DNA of 64,000 bases, from assembly GCA_030704615.1 (NCBI GenBank), contig CM060732.1:27466001-27530000 (forward strand). The letters run 5' to 3'. Positions within the stretch are counted from its first letter, which is position 1. Every line of letters begins with the position of its first letter. Below the pieces are notes generated by a model. That model was given only the letters and a program-made list of their open reading frames with translations, ran no database searches and was not told the origin of the DNA. Shown one piece after another: positions 20,037 to 33,294 of this stretch. This stretch comes from Takakia lepidozioides. Taxonomy: Eukaryota > Plantae > Bryophyta. A program made the translations under genes and the position numbers.

Positions 20037-21590
20037 TGGCGCGTAGGTCAACGCTGGAGCATGGAACATTGCTGGCAGGAGTTCTTTAAAGATCCTTCAC
20101 AATGGTGGGAAACTAGCCTTGACAAGGTAAGCTTTCTTCATGTAGGATGAGAAGGAGTCTCAGGGAGTTTGACTGAACTCTGGTAAAATCGTATTGTGTG
20201 GACTGTATTGAACCCGTAGTTGTTGAGTGAAGTTAGAATCTTGCGTTGCTCTGCAAAACCTGCTTTTAACTGGCCGTATGAGGCTGTTCTTCCTGAGCAG
20301 GGCATGAGAGTAGAATATGAAGATGCACAAGGTCTTTTCCCTGGAGTTTGCAAGGTGCTTGGGAGGGTTGAATGTGGCTGTTCCCAGGTCGCTTTCACAG
20401 ACCACTCCAAAACTCCAGACTACAGACTTAAGCTTGTTTAGCATCAGTGTAAGTTTGGACATGTTCCTCATTGTGTAGAGTCCAATGTAGCCCAAAGAGA
20501 CTTGCATGACTGCTGTTAAAAGCTCACTAGTACTCCTTCATGAAGGAACTTGTTGATGGCGAATTTTCGGGCCCGAAGGTCTACTGTGGAGAATGGAGCA
20601 GAGCTGGCAATTTTTAAAAGATCCTTCACAATGGTGGGACAACCGCAATTGCAAGGGGTGGCTTTCTTAATTTATGATGAGAAGAAGTTTGTCCATCCTG
20701 CAAATGTGGGCTCTTTGTACTATTATCATGATGTGGTATTTTTCCTGGTGTTTACAAGGTACTTCGAGGGTCAATTTGGTCTAAGGAGGCCAAGTTTAGA
20801 TGCATGGCTGCTCAGCTGCACCGCGGTGTTTCTCCTCATAGACCAATCCACGATCACCTGACTACAGACACAAGCAGCACACACACAAGGTCCTTTTGGG
20901 TTGATGGTCGGTTGAGTCCTCCATGGGTGAAAGAAAAGCTACATGCTTTCTTGACACCAGGTCAAGGACAATGTGGTGAGGGCACCTTCTTCAACACATT
21001 TCAGCCTGTTTTTCCCCCTCATCAGAATCATCCCTCGTTTTGTATGTTGAATTCTGCAAGTAAGCTCGTTGGGTGGATCTATGGTGGTTTGGAGTGATTT
21101 TGACATGTTACTGCCAATGTGGCAGCAGGAAAGTATCCAAACACAGATAACAGAGACAAGGAGAAGCTTTGGGATGAATATTTTTCGGGCCCCAATCAAT
21201 CGTGGGACAATCGAGGCAAAAAGGTGAATGCCTGTTAGATTACCGAGAGAAGCAGACAACAATATGCAATGCAAACTTTGTTGGAAACTGTCATCCTCTC
21301 TCTCCCCGGCACATTTTTCAAGTCTTGGGAGTCATTCAAGTTTCGAAGTAGTGTGTGATAAGTAGGGTTGGAGTGCTGGCTAGAACAAATCTAGGCTGTC
21401 ATTGTCAGCCACTAGCAGGGAGGCGAGGATTAGGCGTGGTCATGCAGGGACAGGGATAACTGAAGCACCGGGGATAGAGTGTGGGTCCAGATTCATCCAA
21501 GAGGACCGGATTTCAACCACAATATTACCTATGATACCCTGTGGATCGAGAGCTACAAGAAACCTGCATGGGTAGATGCTCAACTGGAAG
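20037..21590 (+). pseudogene. 5' exons of the PPR gene encoding three OSB-type PDF repeats (some frameshifted)
   Basis: Segments read WQEFFKDPSQWWETSLDK|GTAAG; KTPDYRLK; WQFLKDPSQWWDNRNCK; TNPRSPDYRHK...WVDGRLSPPWVKEKL; LWDEYFSGPNQSWDNRGKK|GTGAAT; CAG|IHPRGPDFNHNITYDTLWIESYKKPAWV. These match the OSB PDF consensus W..FF..P..WWDNR..K.NP..PDFKHK.T...LW. Confidence 0.8.
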
Positions 21591-24500
21591 CAGCAGCAGC
21601 AGCGGCACAGTTGATAATATCAGGCACCTCGACCATGACCACAGCTTCCAAAAGAGGACCAAGAGAGGGAGTCCACAATGCCTCTTCTGGCACTTCTGGG
21701 CATGTGAGGATGCTCTGTGAAGCAGGGCAACTGACAGAGGCTCTACAGGCTTTAAATCAAGGAGGCATTTCAGCAGATTCAGATACTTATGTCTGTCTCT
21801 TGCAGAAGTGCATCAAGGTGAAATGCCTGGAATCTGGAAAGCTGGTGCACGCTCACATTATCCAAAGTGGATTCAAGCCAAACGTTTTTCTACACAACAC
21901 CCTTGTCAACATGTATGTTAAGTGCGGGAGCATTGTCGATGCTCACCAAGTGTTCAACAGAATGCCTCGACGACGATTAATCACGTGGAATATAATGATG
22001 GCAGGATTTACCAAGCATGGGTATGGTATAAATGCTTTGGAGACATATGAGCAAATGATGCGGGAAGGTGTGAGACCCAACTGCATCACGTTTGTTTGTG
22101 TTTGCAATGCATGTTCAAGCCTGGCTGCCCTGGAAAAGGGGAAAGAGGTCCATGGTGACATCATTAAAGCTGGAATTGTACCAGATGTCATTCTGAACAC
22201 TGCCCTGGTGGACATGTATGCCAAATGCCGGAGCATTAAAGATGCAAAGGGAGTGTTCGATCATATGGCTGAACGAAATGTGGTGTCGTGGAACGCGATG
22301 ATTGCAGGATACGCACAGCAACGGTGTGGAATGGAGGCTTTGGAGACCTATGAGCATATGATGCGGGAAGGGGTGAAGCCCAACCACATCACATTTGTTT
22401 GCGTTTGCAACGCGTGTGCATGCCTGGCAGCCCAGGAAAAGGGCAAAGAGGTCCATGGTGACATTGTCAAAGCTGGAATTGTACCAGATGTCATTCTGAA
22501 CACAGCCCTGGTGGACATGTACGCCAAATGCGGGAGCATTGAAATTGCGAAGGGAGTGTTCGACAATATGGCTGAACGAAATGTGGTGTCGTGGAACGCG
22601 ATGCTCGCAGGATATGCACAGCAGGGGCATGGGAGGGAGGCTTTGGAGACTTATGACCAAATGATGCGGGAAGGGGTTAAGCCCAACCACATCACGTTTG
22701 TTTGCGTGTGCAATGCGTGTGCGAGCCTGGCAGCCCTGGAAAAGGGCAAAGAGGTTCATGGTGACATCATCAAAGCTGGAATTGTACCAGATGTCATTCT
22801 GAACACTGCCCTGGTGGACATGTATGCCAAATGCCGGAGCATTGAAGATGCCAAGGGAGCGTTTGAGAAGATGGCTGAACGAGACGTGGTGTCATGGAGC
22901 GCAATGATCGCGGGATATGCACAGCAGGGGCATGGGATGGAGGCTTTGGAGACCTATGAGCAAATGATGCGGGAAGGGGTGAAGCCCGACCTCGTCACGT
23001 TTGTTTGTGTTTGCAATGCATGTACAAACCTGGCAGCCCTGGAAAAGGGCAAAGAGGTCCATGCTGACATTGTTAAAGCTGGACTTATAACAGATGTCAT
23101 TCTGAACAATACCCTGGTGGACATGTATGCCAAATGTGGGTGCATCAAGGATGCAAAGGTAGTGTTCGACACTATCACTGAACGAGATGTGATGTCGTGG
23201 AACGCGATGATCACAGGATATGCACAGCAGGGACACGGGATGGAGGCTTTGGAGACCTATCACCAAATGATGCAGGCAGGAGTGAAGCCCAACCACATCA
23301 CGTATGTTTGCGTTTGCAATGTCTGTGCAAGCCTGGCAGCCCTGGAGAAGGGCAAAGAAGTCCATAGTGCCATCCTCAAAGCTGGAATGGGACCAGATGT
23401 CATTCTGACCACCGCCCTGGTGGACATGTATGCCAAATGTGGGAGCATTGAAGATGCAAAGGGAGTGTTTGACAATATGGGTGAACGAGATGTGGTGTCG
23501 TGGAACGTAATGATCGCAGGATATTCAAAGCAGGGGCGCGGTATGGAGGCTTTGGAGACGTATGAGCAAATGATGAGGGAAGGAGTGAAGCCCAACCACA
23601 TCACATTTATTTGCGTTTGCAATGCATGTGCCAGTCTGACAGCCCTGGAAAAGTGCAAAGAGGTTCATGGTGACATTGTCAAAGCTGGAATCATACCCGA
23701 TGTCATTCTGAACAATACCCTGGTGGATATGTATGCCAAGTGTGGGTGCATCGAGGATGCAAACAGAGTGTTTGATCAAATGGCGGAGCGAGATGTGGTA
23801 TCGTGGAACACAATGATCGCAGGATATGCAAAGGAGGGGCGAGGGATGGAGGCTTTGGTGACCTATGAGCAAATGATGCAGGAAGGTGTGAAGCCCACCC
23901 ACATCACGTTTGTTTGCGTTTGCAATGCGTGTGCAAGCCTGGCAGCCCTGGAAAAGTGCAAAGAGGTCCATGGTGACATTTTTAAAGCTGGAATTGTACC
24001 AGATGTCATTCTGAACACAGCCCTGGTGGACATGTATGCCAAATCCGGGAGCATTGAAGATGCAAAGGGAGTGTTCAACAATATGGCAGACCGAGATGTG
24101 GTGTCCTGGAACGCGATGATTGCAGGATTTGCCCAGCATGGTTGTCATAGGGAAGCCTTGCAACTATTTGAAGGATTGCAAATGGAACATTTGAAGCCAG
24201 ACAGTATCACCTTTATATGTGTTCTCACTGCATGCAGCCACGTTGGCCTACTGGATGAAGGAAGACGCTACTTTCATTCCCTGAGTCAAGATCATGGTGT
24301 TACTCCAACAATAAAGCACTTTGGCTGCATGGTGGATCTTCTTGGACGCGCGGGGCGATTGGATGAGGCAGAGGACCTCATTAATAAAATGCCAACCAAA
24401 CCAGATGCTGTGGTGTGGAAAGCCTTGCTTGGTGCCTGCAGAATTCATGGCAATGTGGAGATGGCTGAACGTGTGGCAACATCTATTCTCAGGTGGGATG

Positions 24501-24688
24501 GACAGGATGCCGCGACTTATGTGTTGCTATCAAACATCTACGCCACTGCTGGCAGGTGTGCTGATAGTGCAAAGGTGAGAAAAGTGATGAAGGTCAGAGG
24601 GGCTAGAAAGGAGGCAGGTCACTGCTGCATTGAGGTTGGCAAAGGGTGCACACCTTTGGTGCAGATGACAAATTGCATCGTAAATTAA
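21479..24688 (+). CDS. PLS-class pentatricopeptide repeat protein with E1/E2 domains (RNA-editing-factor type); main exon starts at 21491
   Basis: About 8 near-identical 101-aa P-L-S triplets, followed by P2-L2-S2, then E motifs VVWKALLGACRIHG and ATYVLLSNIYA, and a PG-box-like RKEAGHCCIEV. Confidence 0.93.
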   Translation: MWVQIHPRGPDFNHNITYDTLWIESYKKPAWVDAQLEAAAAAAQLIISGTSTMTTASKRGPREGVHNASSGTSGHVRMLCEAGQLTEALQALNQGGISADSDTYVCLLQKCIKVKCLESGKLVHAHIIQSGFKPNVFLHNTLVNMYVKCGSIVDAHQVFNRMPRRRLITWNIMMAGFTKHGYGINALETYEQMMREGVRPNCITFVCVCNACSSLAALEKGKEVHGDIIKAGIVPDVILNTALVDMYAKCRSIKDAKGVFDHMAERNVVSWNAMIAGYAQQRCGMEALETYEHMMREGVKPNHITFVCVCNACACLAAQEKGKEVHGDIVKAGIVPDVILNTALVDMYAKCGSIEIAKGVFDNMAERNVVSWNAMLAGYAQQGHGREALETYDQMMREGVKPNHITFVCVCNACASLAALEKGKEVHGDIIKAGIVPDVILNTALVDMYAKCRSIEDAKGAFEKMAERDVVSWSAMIAGYAQQGHGMEALETYEQMMREGVKPDLVTFVCVCNACTNLAALEKGKEVHADIVKAGLITDVILNNTLVDMYAKCGCIKDAKVVFDTITERDVMSWNAMITGYAQQGHGMEALETYHQMMQAGVKPNHITYVCVCNVCASLAALEKGKEVHSAILKAGMGPDVILTTALVDMYAKCGSIEDAKGVFDNMGERDVVSWNVMIAGYSKQGRGMEALETYEQMMREGVKPNHITFICVCNACASLTALEKCKEVHGDIVKAGIIPDVILNNTLVDMYAKCGCIEDANRVFDQMAERDVVSWNTMIAGYAKEGRGMEALVTYEQMMQEGVKPTHITFVCVCNACASLAALEKCKEVHGDIFKAGIVPDVILNTALVDMYAKSGSIEDAKGVFNNMADRDVVSWNAMIAGFAQHGCHREALQLFEGLQMEHLKPDSITFICVLTACSHVGLLDEGRRYFHSLSQDHGVTPTIKHFGCMVDLLGRAGRLDEAEDLINKMPTKPDAVVWKALLGACRIHGNVEMAERVATSILRWDGQDAATYVLLSNIYATAGRCADSAKVRKVMKVRGARKEAGHCCIEVGKGCTPLVQMTNCIVN

Positions 24689-25016
24689 GGAAATCCATGC
24701 CGAGCTGAGAAGATTGTCTGGGCAGATGAAGGAGGCAGGGTATGTGCCTGACGCCCTTTGTATTGCATGATGTGGGGGAGGATCAAAAGGAATATTCTCT
24801 GTGCCACCACAGTGAGAAGCTGGCCATTGGTTTTGGGCTGAGCAGCACTGCCCCTACGACACCTGCCCATCTCATCAAGAATCTTCCGGTGTGTGGTGAC
24901 TGCCACACATCCACGAAGTTCATTTCAAAGATTGTTGGTTGAGCAACTGCTGTACAGGACACTAACTGCTTTCACCACTTTGAAGATGGGGTTTGTTCTT
25001 GTGGGAGTGCTGGTGA
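24645..25016 (+). pseudogene. Disrupted DYW cytidine-deaminase domain
   Basis: Across frames it reads [36 protein letters not shown]...[12 protein letters not shown]...[10 protein letters not shown]...IVG*...FHHFEDGVCSCG, then ECW*. About four frameshifts and one stop. Confidence 0.9.
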
Positions 25017-28898: not shown

Positions 28899-31733
28899 GT
28901 GTGTTGTTCAGAAGGGAGCTTCAGAATTTGGAGGTTTGTCCAAAATGTCAGGCACGTCGTTATGTGGTGGGTACGAAGACACCAGTACCTCGTAAGGTCC
29001 TTCGACATTTCCCTATCATTCCAAGGCTGCTTCGAATGTATAAAGCCAAATCCATCTCAGAGTTAATGTCATGGCACTTTAAGAATCGAAGTCTGGATGG
29101 CTTGGTTAGGCACCCAGCAGACAGCAAGGCTTGGGCCCACATTGACCAAAAATGGCCTGAGTTTGCAGCGGACCCCAGAAATCTGCGATTGGGTCTCGCA
29201 TGGGATGGTGTCATTCCTTACAGTGATAAATCAAACAAATGGTCAACTTGGCCTGTCATGTTGGTAAACTATAATCTTCCACCCTAGCTGTGTACTAAGC
29301 CATTTTTCACGATGTTGGCTTTATTGATTCCTGGACCACAATCTGTGGGAAATGACAATGCAGATGTTTATCTGCAGCCCCTTGTGGATGAGCTAAAATT
29401 GTTGTGGGAAGTTGGTGTGGAGGCATTGGATGGAAGTAGCCTAGTGGGGCAACAGTCATTTCGCATGAGGGCCATCTTGATGTGGTCAATCCACGACTTT
29501 CCAGCTTATGGGTTGTTAGCAGGATGCGCACACGGGGGATACAAGGCTTGCCCAGCTTGCGGCCCTAATGTTGATTCCAGGTACTCGAAGGCATGCAAAA
29601 AAGTTTTGTATCTTGGTCATAGGAGATACTTGCCTGCTGTTCATCCTATAGGAATAACTCGTCCCACTTTAACGGACATGTGGAACATAGAGCAGCTCCT
29701 ATGGTGGTCACTGCAAGTGAGCAATTTGACCGGGCTAAAACCAGAGAGTTGTATCTCGCAATGGGAGGGGCTGAGGGGGGAAAACAGGACCCTTCAAAGG
29801 AACATGGCATGAAACGGGTCACTATTTTGTTCCAATTGCCATACTGGAAAGACTTACTCATCCGATACACACTGGATGTGATGCATTGTGAAAAAAATTT
29901 GTGTGAGAATGTGCTGAGAACCATTCTTGGGGAGAAGGACACAACCACATCTAGGAAGGATATGGAACTCAATGTCATTCGTGAACACTTGTGGTTGAGA
30001 CCCCATCCCTCTCACCCGAACAAGTTGGTGAAGCCTTTGGCCCCATATGTTCTTACTGAAGATGAGAAGGTGTGGTTTTTGGAAACATTGGCTGCAGTAA
30101 AGGCCCCCACAGGTTATGCTGCCACATTCCAGAAACATGTGGCTGACAATAAATTGTCTACAATGAAAACCCATGACTACCATGTAATGATGCAGCAGAT
30201 TTTACCTCTTTGCATTCGAGGGGTATTGGGAAAGGGTCCACGGATGGCAATTATGAGGCTTTCTCGAGTCTTCCGAAAAGTGTGTGCAAAGATCATTAAT
30301 CCAACTGAGCTACCGGCCTTAAAAGAAGATGTTGCAATCACTATGTGTCTGCTGGAGAAAGAATTCCCTCCGTCATTTTTTGATATCATGACTCACTTGC
30401 TTGTACACCTTGTGGACGAATTGGAGGTGTGTGGTCCCGTGTCTGTATCCTATGGAACGGTATATGAAGACATTAAAAGGCTATGTAAGGAATATGAGCC
30501 GACCTGAAGGGAGCATGGCGGAAGGGTATGCTTTGGATGAGGCCCTAGGGTTTCTAACTGAGTATATGGCTGAATTTCATGCTACAAGCCGAAGGGTGTG
30601 GGACTCCAATGAAGAAGACTCAGTTAGTGGGGAGGTGGTTCAAGGATTGGGAAGTGTACGAGTCCTCACCATTCAAGAACGAGACAGTGCACACGAGTAT
30701 ATTTTGCACAACACAGATTGCATGAAACCATTCCTTGAGTAAGTATGTTGCTTATCATATCCTGTGTGTTTCATTTCTGCCAATGGTATAAGCTGTAATC
30801 CTCAATTCTCATTTGGATAGGGCCTATGAAGAGGAGATGGCACTCATAGAAGCATCCCGCACTGAGTTCAGAACAACATTCCTTTGTGGACAAGACCAAG
30901 ACCACCACAATGGAGAAATTCCATACCCAACAGATATGCGCTTACTGGCTCCATTCCATGACTGGATTGAAGGTGCTGTCCAACGCAAGGTGAGTTCAGG
31001 TGAGTCCTATGATTTGGACATATGCCATTTATGTATACCACCAGCAGTACAGTCCTTGGGCTTCAAGTCCATGTATGCTTACGGCAATCACTTTCGAGCA
31101 ATACGTGATGGGACTGGCGCCACAGACAGGGTGACATTTGATTCTGGAGTTGCTCAAGTATTCCATCATGAAAGCGAAAATAGAGCAGGTATGTCCAAAC
31201 GAGTGTTATCCCAATTGGAATATGTGGGTGTTGTAACAGAAATAATTCAACTGGATTACGGAATTCTTCACCCAATTTTGTTCTTGTGTAGATGGGTGAG
31301 GTCACACATGGTGGGCCGGAATGCCACCATGAAACGAGATGATTATGGCTTTCTCTTGGTTGACTTCAGTCGCATGTTACCTCGGATGGAGCAGCCCTGG
31401 ACATTCCCTAGTCAGGTGGAGCAAGTTTTTTTCTCGGATGAAAAAAGTTCACGAGGGAACTGGAAGGTGGTCCTTCACAAGGACCCTCGATCCCGACGAG
31501 TGGTTCACGATATTACAGAAGTGGCACTGGGTGAGGGAGACACTTATGTAGGCATGGTGCCTCATGAAATTCCTTATAACATCATGACTGAGCTTGCTGT
31601 TTGTGTTCCTTTGAGTGAGGCAGATGAATTGGCCATTGCCAACTTGAATGCACTTGCAAGGCAGAGGCAAAATGGTAGAAGGCGGAGGCAAGCTCCACAT
31701 GGGAGGTACCAGGCCAGTTGTGCTATGGTCTAG
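28899..31733 (+). mobile_element. CACTA (En/Spm) TnpD-type transposase pseudogene with DUF4218/DUF4216-like regions
   Basis: Motifs CPKC..RY, LRHFPIIPRL, RHPADSKAW, DPRNLRLGL, IHDFPAYG, LDVMHCEKN, MKTHDYH, MYPMERYM-like, FPSQVEQVFF. Stop at 29285 and frameshifts. Probable intron ~30739-30820. Confidence 0.92.
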
Positions 31734-31875
31734 AGTTGGTTTCTGCTATTGCATGTATTTTTCCAGGGTTTAGACTTGATACAGCATGGTACCTTGCATG
31801 GGTGGGAGTGACTGAGCTGTTGGGGTGGGCAAAATTCTGACAAACACACTTTCATTTGTGACAGTGAACCCTAAA

Positions 31876-32900
31876 CAGTCATGGAGTTGTGGCCTGCATA
31901 CTTTTCTGACCCTAGTCAATGGTGGGCCAATTGTGGCAAAAAGGTGAATGCATGTTGGATTATAGAGAGTAGCAGATGCAATTGAGCATAGGAACTAGTG
32001 TGAGAAGTTGAGTTGGGTGTTTCCTAGAACAAATGTAGGCTGTTATTGTCAGTTGCTACCAGCAAGGCAAAGATGTATGCATGATTTGTGAGAGGCATGG
32101 ATAGCTGAAGGAGCAGGGATAGAGTGTGGGCCCATATTCATCCAAGAGGGCCACATTTTTGGAATTGTACCTGATGTGATTTTGAACAATGCCCTCGTGG
32201 ATATGTATGCCAAATGTGGGAGCATCAAGGGCAAGCCTGCCAGCTCTGGAAAAGGTTCTGATCAGGTCCATGGTTTCATTGTCAAAGCTGGAATTGTACC
32301 TGATTGTGATTGTGGACAATGCCCTCGTGGACAAGTATGCCAAATGTGCGAGCATCAAGGGCAAGCTTGGCAGCTCTGGAAAAGGGAAGAGGTCCATGGT
32401 TTCATTGTCAAAGCTTTGGCATACATGTCCACGAGGGCATTGTCCAGAATCACAATCACCTACAATGCAAGCTTTGACAATGAAACCATAGACCTGATCT
32501 TCCCTTTCCCAGAGCTGGCAGGCTTGCCCTTCATGCTCCCACATTTGGCATACATGTCCACAAGGGCATTGTCCAGAATCACAATCAGGTACAATTCCAG
32601 CTTAGACAATGAAACCACGGACTTGATCTTCCCTTTTCCAGAGCTGGCAGGCTTGCCCTTGATGCTCCCACATTTGGTATCCCTAAAGCATGGACCTAAT
32701 CTTCCCTTTTCCAGAGCTGCCAGGCTTGCCCTTCATGCTAACACATTTGGCATACATGTCCACGAGGGCATTGTCCAGAATCACATCAGGTACAATTCCA
32801 GCTTTGACAATGAAACCATGGACCCGATCTTCCCTTTTCCAGAGCTCCCAGGCTTGCCCTTCATGCTGAAACATTTGGCATACATGTCCACGAGGGCTCT
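31876..32900 (+). pseudogene. Second PDF-PPR paralog remnant, rearranged into a fold-back
   Basis: MELWPAYFSDPSQWWANCGKK|GTGAAT, an intron similar to 21223-21490, IHPRGPHF, then internally deleted PPR units forward (32160-32414) and inverted (32414-32900). Confidence 0.8.
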
Positions 32901-33294
32901 TCAATGTTTTCGTTTATCAGCCCTTTAAAAATTAGGAAAGCAAGAGATTTGGGTTACAGATGGGTGATGCCGCCATACCAGCACTTATGAAGAGATGAGG
33001 CCTTATCAGGCCTTGGAGTACACATCTGCCGTGTGGGTTGGCCAACTCCAATCATGCTAAAACTTTAGAATCCATTCAGCTTTTGGTGCTCAAAGAGAGC
33101 ATGTCAGCGCATGCACCATAAGATGTCAAGGAAGGAAACCTTTGTAGAAGGAAGGTGTCGTTCTAGGACAGAGGTTTCCTTAGAGGAACGGAATAAAACC
33201 ATAAGCGGGTATAGAGGACCAGTGCATATATACAGTACATCTGCGTCAATTTCGCAAGGCGAAAACTTCAGTAGAGTAGCCAAGAACTTGCAGC

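Follow-up and report, generated by a model that had tools for sequence, protein, structure and literature searches.

The stretch of Takakia lepidozioides DNA analysed here comprises 64,000 nucleotides of contig CM060732.1 (positions 27,466,001 to 27,530,000) and is called the window below; all coordinates refer to it. Between positions 20040 and 25016, on the + strand, the window carries three two-part copies of the PDF motif, a long open frame of pentatricopeptide repeats (PPR) and a broken DYW domain. The PDF motif is a stretch of ~50 residues with a conserved Pro-Asp-Phe, which lies C-terminal to the OB-fold of the OSB proteins (organellar proteins that bind single-stranded DNA) and is enough for the binding of single-stranded DNA (ssDNA) (PMC6963530, PMC6451138, PMC13393729). 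For AtOSB1, ssDNA binding by the PDF motif alone has been described (PMC6963530, PMC6451138). A first-pass annotation of the window had reported three PDF repeats, each apparently split by an intron, and had proposed that the third is spliced in phase into the PPR reading frame. We located all of the halves on the + strand, and both statements proved correct, with the splice donor at 21223, one base away from the position of about 21222 given previously.

Layout of the locus

Each copy of the PDF motif is coded in two halves. The first half follows the consensus W..(F/L)(F/L).(D/G)P.Q(W/S)W(D/E)(N/T)(R/S)..K and runs up to the expected GT donor, and the second half, which begins after AG, follows the consensus ..P.(S/G/T)PD(F/Y).(H/L)... 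The first half of PDF1 (A1, 20040-20126, RVGQRWSMEHCWQEFFKDPSQWWETSLDK) ends in WQEFFKDPSQWWETSLDK before a GTAAGC donor and has ETS in place of the DNR triplet. Its second half (B1, 20388-20438, VAFTDHSKTPDYRLKLV) ends in ..KTPDYRLKLV, which is followed by a TAG that reaches to 20441, and is without its LW..PPWV part. The first half of PDF2 (A2, 20575-20655, EGLLWRMEQSWQFLKDPSQWWDNRNCK) ends in WQFLKDPSQWWDNRNCK and has lost its splice donor, which reads GG and not GT. The second half of PDF2 (B2, 20842-20941, TNPRSPDYRHKQHTHK) starts with TNPRSPDYRHK.. and contains one frameshift near 20886-20891, with its tail, SFWVDGRLSPPWVKEKL at 20891-20941, lying in another frame. Two in-frame stop codons, at 21095-97 and 21101-03, interrupt the former exon that was made up of B2, a linker and the first half of PDF3. 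This first half (A3, 21128-21223, GKYPNTDNRDKEKLWDEYFSGPNQSWDNRGKK) ends in KLWDEYFSGPNQSWDNRGKK at the donor AAG/GTGAAT. A phase-0 intron of 267 nt (21224-21490, GT..CAG) is inferred to follow, and the second half of PDF3 (B3, 21491-21586, IHPRGPDFNHNITYDTLWIESYKKPAWVDAQL) starts at CAG/ATT with IHPRGPDFNHNITYDTLWIESYKKPAWV. B3 shares its exon and its frame with the PPR array and is in phase with an open reading frame (ORF) of 1069 codons at 21479-24688.

This ORF matches the Pfam families PPR_2 (3e-139) and PPR (4e-113) and was parsed as eight P-L-S triplets followed by P2-L2-S2; an E1/E2 extension is present as well (Pfam E_motif 1.3e-14, residues 990-1052). Downstream of B3 (21587-24688), a linker leads into the PLS-class PPR array and P2-L2-S2; E1 and E2 come next, and the frame reaches into the start of the DYW domain, where the PG box is degenerate, before its stop codon at 24686-24688. 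From PDF3 through the eight PLS triplets to E1/E2, about 1,100 codons are still open as a single frame. The relic of the DYW deaminase occupies 24643-25016, where the Pfam family DYW_deaminase matches an out-of-frame piece (24742-24939) with an E-value of 6.8e-19.

The array is largely a tandem repeat. Tandem Repeats Finder (TRF) reported 7.1 copies of a 303-bp unit, equal to one P-L-S triplet, at 21995-24138, with 85% matches and zero indels, and the seven triplets are 82-90% identical among themselves. These units vary chiefly at the RNA-specifying positions 5 and last, and the PPR-code read-out of the array is a periodic Y-?-A/G/U. The pairwise ratio of nonsynonymous to synonymous substitutions (Ka/Ks) of the seven units ranges from 0.15 to 0.83 with a mean of about 0.35, at Ks values of 0.17-0.67, which indicates that the core evolved as coding sequence after the array had expanded. 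The PPR ORF is most closely related to PLS-DYW proteins, of which those of Diphasiastrum are 52-55% identical to it; others come from Ginkgo, Cryptomeria and ferns. When the first 100 residues of this frame served as the query of a word search, nothing was matched.

Two further observations concern the array. On the - strand, antisense ORFs of up to 214 aa run through it (21943-24163) and recur with each 303-bp unit; they look like a by-product of a stop-free repeat and not like genes. In addition, the Pfam family Transpos_assoc (PF13963) matches residues 98-135 of the PPR ORF (3.2e-14) and a second short stretch, both of which lie inside the PPR array. The same family is also assigned to two PPR proteins of Ginkgo (P0051 and P0099), and the match is probably spurious, a cross-match of cysteine-rich L/S motifs.

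The OSB-type PDF motif and its fusion to PPR proteins

We compared the motif with OSB proteins in both directions. Exons were searched separately and by reference, and full PDF motifs were taken only from the unsplit Logan contigs L006-L009. In the forward test, a profile of alignment A1, which consists of five PPR-linked second halves (from the window and from L001, L003, L004 and L005), was run against 1.84 billion representatives at a threshold of E<=1e-3 and matched 514 of them. Many of the matched proteins are 300-530 residues long; they have an OB-fold (Pfam SSB) in their N-terminal part and match the motif two to six times near the C-terminus. Proteins named OSB1 and OSB3 were retrieved with E-values down to 1e-28; the source names include "OSB3, chloroplastic/mitochondrial" (Amborella, 4.6e-23; Cardamine, Cajanus, Canna and Chenopodium), "organellar single-stranded DNA binding protein 3" (Euphorbia) and "OSB1, mitochondrial-like" (Populus). 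The OSB matches also bear the first half of the motif, although the query held second halves only.

In the reverse test, hidden Markov models (HMMs) made from 71 non-PPR OSB-type matches only were run on all 3023 six-frame pieces of the window. For the first half, they detected A2 (8e-5), A1 (2e-4), A3 (2e-4) and the corresponding half of a second remnant in the window (9e-3), and the next match had E=2.1. For the second half, they detected B3 (7e-7), and the next matches had E>=0.14, including both pieces of the broken B2, which were matched weakly (0.14 and 0.41). Because the forward and the reverse tests agree, the identity of the motif as the OSB-type PDF motif, as named in the first-pass annotation, is established by direct comparison.

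Other resources returned little for this motif. Pfam searches with the half-motifs, with whole PDF motifs and with a three-PDF stretch gave no family, PDB sequence searches with the halves and with a full-motif profile gave nothing but one chance match (E=1.6), and an ESM Atlas feature search with the PDF region of protein P0021 gave no usable match. OSB proteins have the same ~50-residue PDF (W..F..P..WWDNR..K / PDFKHK..LW..P.WV) in one to several tandem copies. However, their layout is an N-terminal SSB-like OB-fold with C-terminal PDFs, whereas the PDFs of this locus lie N-terminal to the PPR array, and similarity to an OB-fold or SSB domain is absent from the whole window (best tblastn E=0.24, scattered).

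Among the 120 best relatives of the PPR ORF, 25 of the 36 proteins from Diphasiastrum complanatum have one to three complete PDFs before the PLS array. The combination of PDF and PLS repeats also occurs, in the same list, in a protein of Calypogeia fissa (P0086) and in three ORFs from metagenome or ENA contigs, and the motif was found in none of the about 49 proteins from Cryptomeria and Ginkgo, which are a small sample of seed plants. Complete DYW ends with HSE, CxDCH and GDYW are present in the PDF-PPR proteins P0008, P0048, P0077 and P0078. When the PDF region of P0027 was used for a word search, at least 71 Diphasiastrum PPR clusters were retrieved and no OSB protein, the latter probably owing to the word filter and the length window. 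Only the exhaustive profile search of the forward test reached OSB proteins, and it added two proteins of Sphagnum, namely P0227 (PLS-E, five species) and P0261 (PDF-PPR-E-DYW), and P0217 of Adiantum. In Logan contig L006 (4755 nt, cDNA or genomic; P0179), a single ORF with a start codon holds three unsplit PDFs and a PPR array. At the level of sequence comparison, PDF and PPR-DYW are genuinely combined, and mosses, liverworts, clubmosses and ferns commonly have this combination.

The position of the intron is also shared. The motif is divided exactly as in the window in L001, L004 and L005 and in a gene annotated in Calypogeia (L003), with ..WWD(N/H)RSEK before a GT..AG intron and five codons between the intron and P-D-F. 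In the OSB gene of the angiosperm Parasponia andersonii (L010, 8937-11400), all three PDFs are split by a phase-0 intron at the same place, five codons before P-D-F. Since OSB and PPR-linked PDFs have this intron position in common, we infer that the split module descends from a common source, and exon shuffling would be the simplest route. The PDF arrays themselves seem to grow by duplication of a unit in which a linker joins a second half to the first half that follows. The window has the layout of these genes, with PDFs upstream of the PLS array, the junction 21223/21491 and the last half-motif in the PPR exon. The intact homologues and the common intron position bear out the earlier proposal that the PDFs are spliced to, and are part of, a PLS-PPR-E-DYW gene. 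They also support the suggestion of a family, whose members we found in Sphagnum, Calypogeia, Diphasiastrum and Adiantum. The first-pass annotation had regarded a lack of intact homologues joining PDF and PPR regions as fatal to its reading; such homologues occur in several plant lineages.

In the literature, the PDF motif was earlier described only in OSB proteins (PMC6963530, PMC13393729). No mention of PPR proteins is made in a 2026 paper on how OSB proteins evolved (PMC13393729), and the PDF motif goes unmentioned in a kingdom-wide survey, also from 2026, of domain fusions in editing factors (PMC13386178). Because the motif is without a Pfam model, it is invisible to domain-based surveys. 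Full-text searches of open-access papers and preprints turned up none in which the PDF motif and PPR or DYW proteins are named together. The architecture is without a published description in this literature, in agreement with the first-pass annotation, which knew of no characterised protein of this kind.

PDF motifs were also seen in some unusual carriers. A 521-residue protein of the snow alga Sanguina aurantia (Chlamydomonadales; P0180 / P0328) has five good PDFs and is without a Pfam SSB domain. According to the OSB literature, Chlamydomonas has no OSB genes (PMC13393729), and PDF modules may thus be older than OSB proteins or more widely distributed. Among angiosperms, P0175 of Kingdonia uniflora has 14 PDF stretches in 1160 residues, P0236 of Coptis chinensis is a kinesin-motor protein with three PDFs, and P0196 of Striga hermonthica, named ICR2, has an SSB domain and three PDFs. 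All three may be gene-model fusions.

Decay of the copy and competing explanations

Alignment of the DYW part to intact relatives revealed frameshifts at about 24638-42, about 24672 and about 24755, and a TGA at 24940-42, a position that codes for Arg in intact homologues. At the C-terminus, CGDYW has been replaced by CGSAGE.., and AGHCC stands in the PG box; HSE and CGDCH can still be made out. With at least three frameshifts and the TGA, the locus does not contain an intact in-frame DYW deaminase, and because the reading frame of this domain is broken, this copy cannot be a deaminase that acts in cis. The lesions on the 5' side are the stop and the missing second part of B1, the loss of the donor of A2, the frameshift in B2 and the two stops before A3. 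PDF3 is open, but SQWW has changed to NQSW and PDFKHK to PDFNHN, at positions that belong to the PDF residues invariant or near-invariant across 48 family members; the second K of PDFKHK, which is lost in B3, is invariant in all 48. The alignment to intact relatives is thus in agreement with the lesions in the PDF exons and in the DYW domain that were noted in the first-pass annotation. The core of 3.2 kb has no stop or indel. Because this core is free of lesions and carries the marks of past purifying selection, its sequence indicates that the DYW end and the 5' modules died well before it.

Judged from sequence, the locus is probably a decayed member of a large PLS-class PPR RNA-editing family of seed-free land plants with PDFs in front, and it is now most likely a pseudogene. 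Some observations weigh against this interpretation. No start codon or targeting-peptide exon was found in phase with A3, which itself has no ATG and is preceded by two stops; the first ATG of the ORF is at codon 52, past the PDF half. Moreover, the 3.2-kb core is intact, as opposed to five lesions in about 380 bp of the DYW part, and because this contrast fits survival without the DYW domain, the gene may live on as an E2-type factor. Such a living gene would consist of PDF3, the PLS array and E1/E2, or would give a PDF-less product from the ATG at codon 52, and would work with a deaminase supplied in trans, like the E-class PPR proteins of seed plants, whereas the dead pieces of PDF1, PDF2 and DYW would be relics in its 5' region and 3' untranslated region. 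If the lesions had been spread evenly, the probability that all five fall within the DYW part, with no stop or indel in 3.2 kb, would be ~(400/3600)^5, roughly 2e-5. The Ka/Ks of about 0.35 among the triplets, at Ks of 0.17-0.67, likewise speaks of selection after the expansion of the array, the units vary mainly at code positions 5 and last, and E1 and E2 are intact. However, a living gene is difficult to reconcile with the lack of an ATG or a targeting exon in phase with A3, with the two stops and the frameshift in the ancestral B2-A3 exon, with the loss of near-invariant residues of PDF3 (W to S, PDFKHK to PDFNHN) and with the degenerate PG box. In addition, we know of no trans-acting DYW partner in seed-free plants. 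We consider survival of the gene minus its DYW domain unlikely, although it is the main rival.

Indel errors do occur in long-read assemblies, and some of the lesions consist of a single frameshift, as would be expected if the gene were intact and the lesions were errors of sequencing or assembly. Others among the lesions, however, are substitutions, which indel errors do not produce (the TGA at 24940-42, the TAG after B1, the stops at 21095-21103 and the change of GT to GG at A2). B1 is incomplete, the DYW triplet at the C-terminus is gone, and errors would not spare the 3.2-kb middle of the locus. We regard an intact gene hidden by such errors as very improbable. It could also be argued that an OSB pseudogene lies by chance beside an unrelated PPR gene, since the PDF motif was earlier described only in OSB proteins (PMC6963530, PMC13393729) and the upstream modules are broken. 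In that case, the last half-motif would not be expected in the exon and the frame of the PPR array, where it is found. The same layout and intron are present in annotated or intact genes of four other lineages, the window is without an OB-fold, and the junction recurs, together with its intron, in a second copy within the window. Because of the missing OB-fold, the second copy with its intron and the intact homologues, we reject chance adjacency, which is scarcely credible. The decayed PDF-PPR editing gene remains our preferred explanation of the locus.

The second copy is the remnant that the first-pass annotation had placed at 31876; it is real and repeats the junction of half-motif, intron and half-motif. 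Its PDF first half (ELWPAYFSDPSQWWANCGKK, followed by GTGAAT) lies at 31875-31943 on the + strand. A PDF second half (IHPRGPHF, 32136-32159) together with PPR fragments is found at 32136-32928, also on the + strand. The DNA of the remnant is 78% identical to 21353-21504, intron included, and a deletion fuses IHPRGPHF directly to a fragment of an L/S motif. The stretch 32176-32928 is a patchwork of sense and antisense PPR fragments, with inverted repeats about 89-91% identical (for example, 32191-32402 versus 32897-32685, 89%) and direct repeats about 90% identical. Upstream of it, three ORFs on the + strand (29680-31733) match the Pfam families DUF4218 (1.7e-16 and 6.4e-12) and DUF4216 (9e-8), which we take to be typical of genes associated with transposases of the CACTA/En-Spm type. 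These ORFs end about 140 bp before the remnant, and a transposon may have been inserted beside it or may have carried the remnant along.

The PDF module in intact relatives

To describe the module in an intact protein, we used an AlphaFold2 model of the Sphagnum compactum PDF-PPR-E-DYW protein P0261, made with 48 relatives. The model has a disordered presequence (residues 1-85), the PDF module at residues 88-147 with a predicted local distance difference test score (pLDDT) of 82-94, a linker of low confidence (148-156) and then the PPR solenoid. The PDF module alone, modelled from 11 OSB and PPR sequences (alignment A3), gave a pLDDT of 92.8. In these models, it is predicted to be a compact mini-domain of ~55 residues, in which three short strands lie between two helices. 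No analogue was found when the model of the PDF was submitted to fold searches (Foldseek E>6, VIA Z<=2.4).

We propose that members of the family encode a targeting peptide, one to three OSB-type PDFs, a PLS PPR array and E1/E2, to which a DYW cytidine deaminase is usually added. Each PDF is coded in two halves with a phase-0 intron between them, the last half lying in the exon of the whole PPR-DYW body. Joined to the N-terminal end of the PPR solenoid by a short flexible linker, the PDF would face the 5' side of the bound RNA and would bind single-stranded nucleic acid non-specifically beside the RNA stretch that is read by the PPRs. This binding would add affinity or keep the target single-stranded, and the DYW domain would deaminate the downstream C. 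By analogy with OSB proteins and from the predicted structure, non-specific single-strand binding beside the PPR site is the most likely role of the PDF in intact relatives, and because OSB PDF motifs bind ssDNA, it is the most economical idea. Some points tell against it. The motif is covered by neither a solved structure nor a Pfam family, and the role suggested for it comes from the OSB literature and the predicted structure. Furthermore, Physcomitrium PPR56 edits well in E. coli without its N-terminus (PMC10482289), a result that bears on the question only if PPR56 has a PDF.

A different role at the level of the family would be that the PDF binds organellar ssDNA and places editors on nucleoids or transcription bubbles for co-transcriptional editing, or that the DYW domain would act on ssDNA. 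The sole biochemical datum on the PDF is indeed ssDNA binding by AtOSB (PMC6963530, PMC6451138). The module is also strongly conserved in PPR proteins, and in the predicted structure it forms a mini-domain of its own, borne on a linker. On the other hand, its place at the 5'-RNA side of the PPR tract means that it could equally touch RNA. DYW enzymes are RNA editors, and many proteins that bind ssDNA bind single-stranded RNA too. It is at least as likely that the module binds single-stranded RNA next to the PPR tract as that it tethers the editor to nucleoid ssDNA or that ssDNA is deaminated, and we consider the ssDNA role improbable.

The relation of the locus to known systems can be summarised as follows. 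PLS-class PPR-E-DYW editors, such as Physcomitrium PPR56 and PPR65 and the DYW-type proteins of Arabidopsis, share with the locus the P-L-S triplets, P2-L2-S2 and E1/E2, as well as a DYW domain that has the HSE and CxDCH signatures. In contrast to them, the locus adds OSB-type PDFs between the presequence and the PPR array, its array is unusually regular with seven triplets, and its DYW frame is broken. With OSB proteins, the PPR-linked PDFs share the phase-0 intron five codons before P-D-F. E/E+ PPR proteins arose by loss of the DYW domain and use a deaminase in trans (DYW1, DYW2 and MEF8 in Arabidopsis). The open frame of the locus, like that of the E/E+ (E2) proteins, ends just after E2, but it is truncated by a frameshift, a decaying DYW relic lies downstream and a functional 5' end was not found. 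Accessory RNA-binding partners of editing factors (MORF/RIP, ORRM and OZ) and RRM-PPR fusions (PMC13386178) embody the same idea of a general nucleic-acid or helper module combined with a PPR specificity factor, although the PDF module is unrelated to them in sequence.

We tentatively suggest, as a possibility that we would not call probable, that a large fraction of the organellar editing factors of seed-free land plants carry an exon-shuffled OSB-type PDF that would be needed for editing in vivo. It would either open the RNA or add affinity, as a built-in counterpart of the MORF/ORRM helpers that seed plants have, or park the factor on nucleoid ssDNA for co-transcriptional editing. The locus would then record the loss of modules, DYW first and then the PDFs, on the way toward an E-type factor or toward death.

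PPR-DYW proteins are the RNA editors of plant organelles and the basis of programmable RNA base editors, and OSB proteins guard the organellar genomes; heterologous editing assays routinely remove the N-terminus of the editing factor. The common PDF motif and its common intron link the editing factors and the OSB system by descent, and the PDF-PPR combination gives a testable idea of how editing may work in plants without MORF-type helpers. To this, the Takakia locus adds a decayed copy with three PDF modules, which would record the order in which the parts were lost and which retains an array of near-identical triplets differing mainly at code positions.

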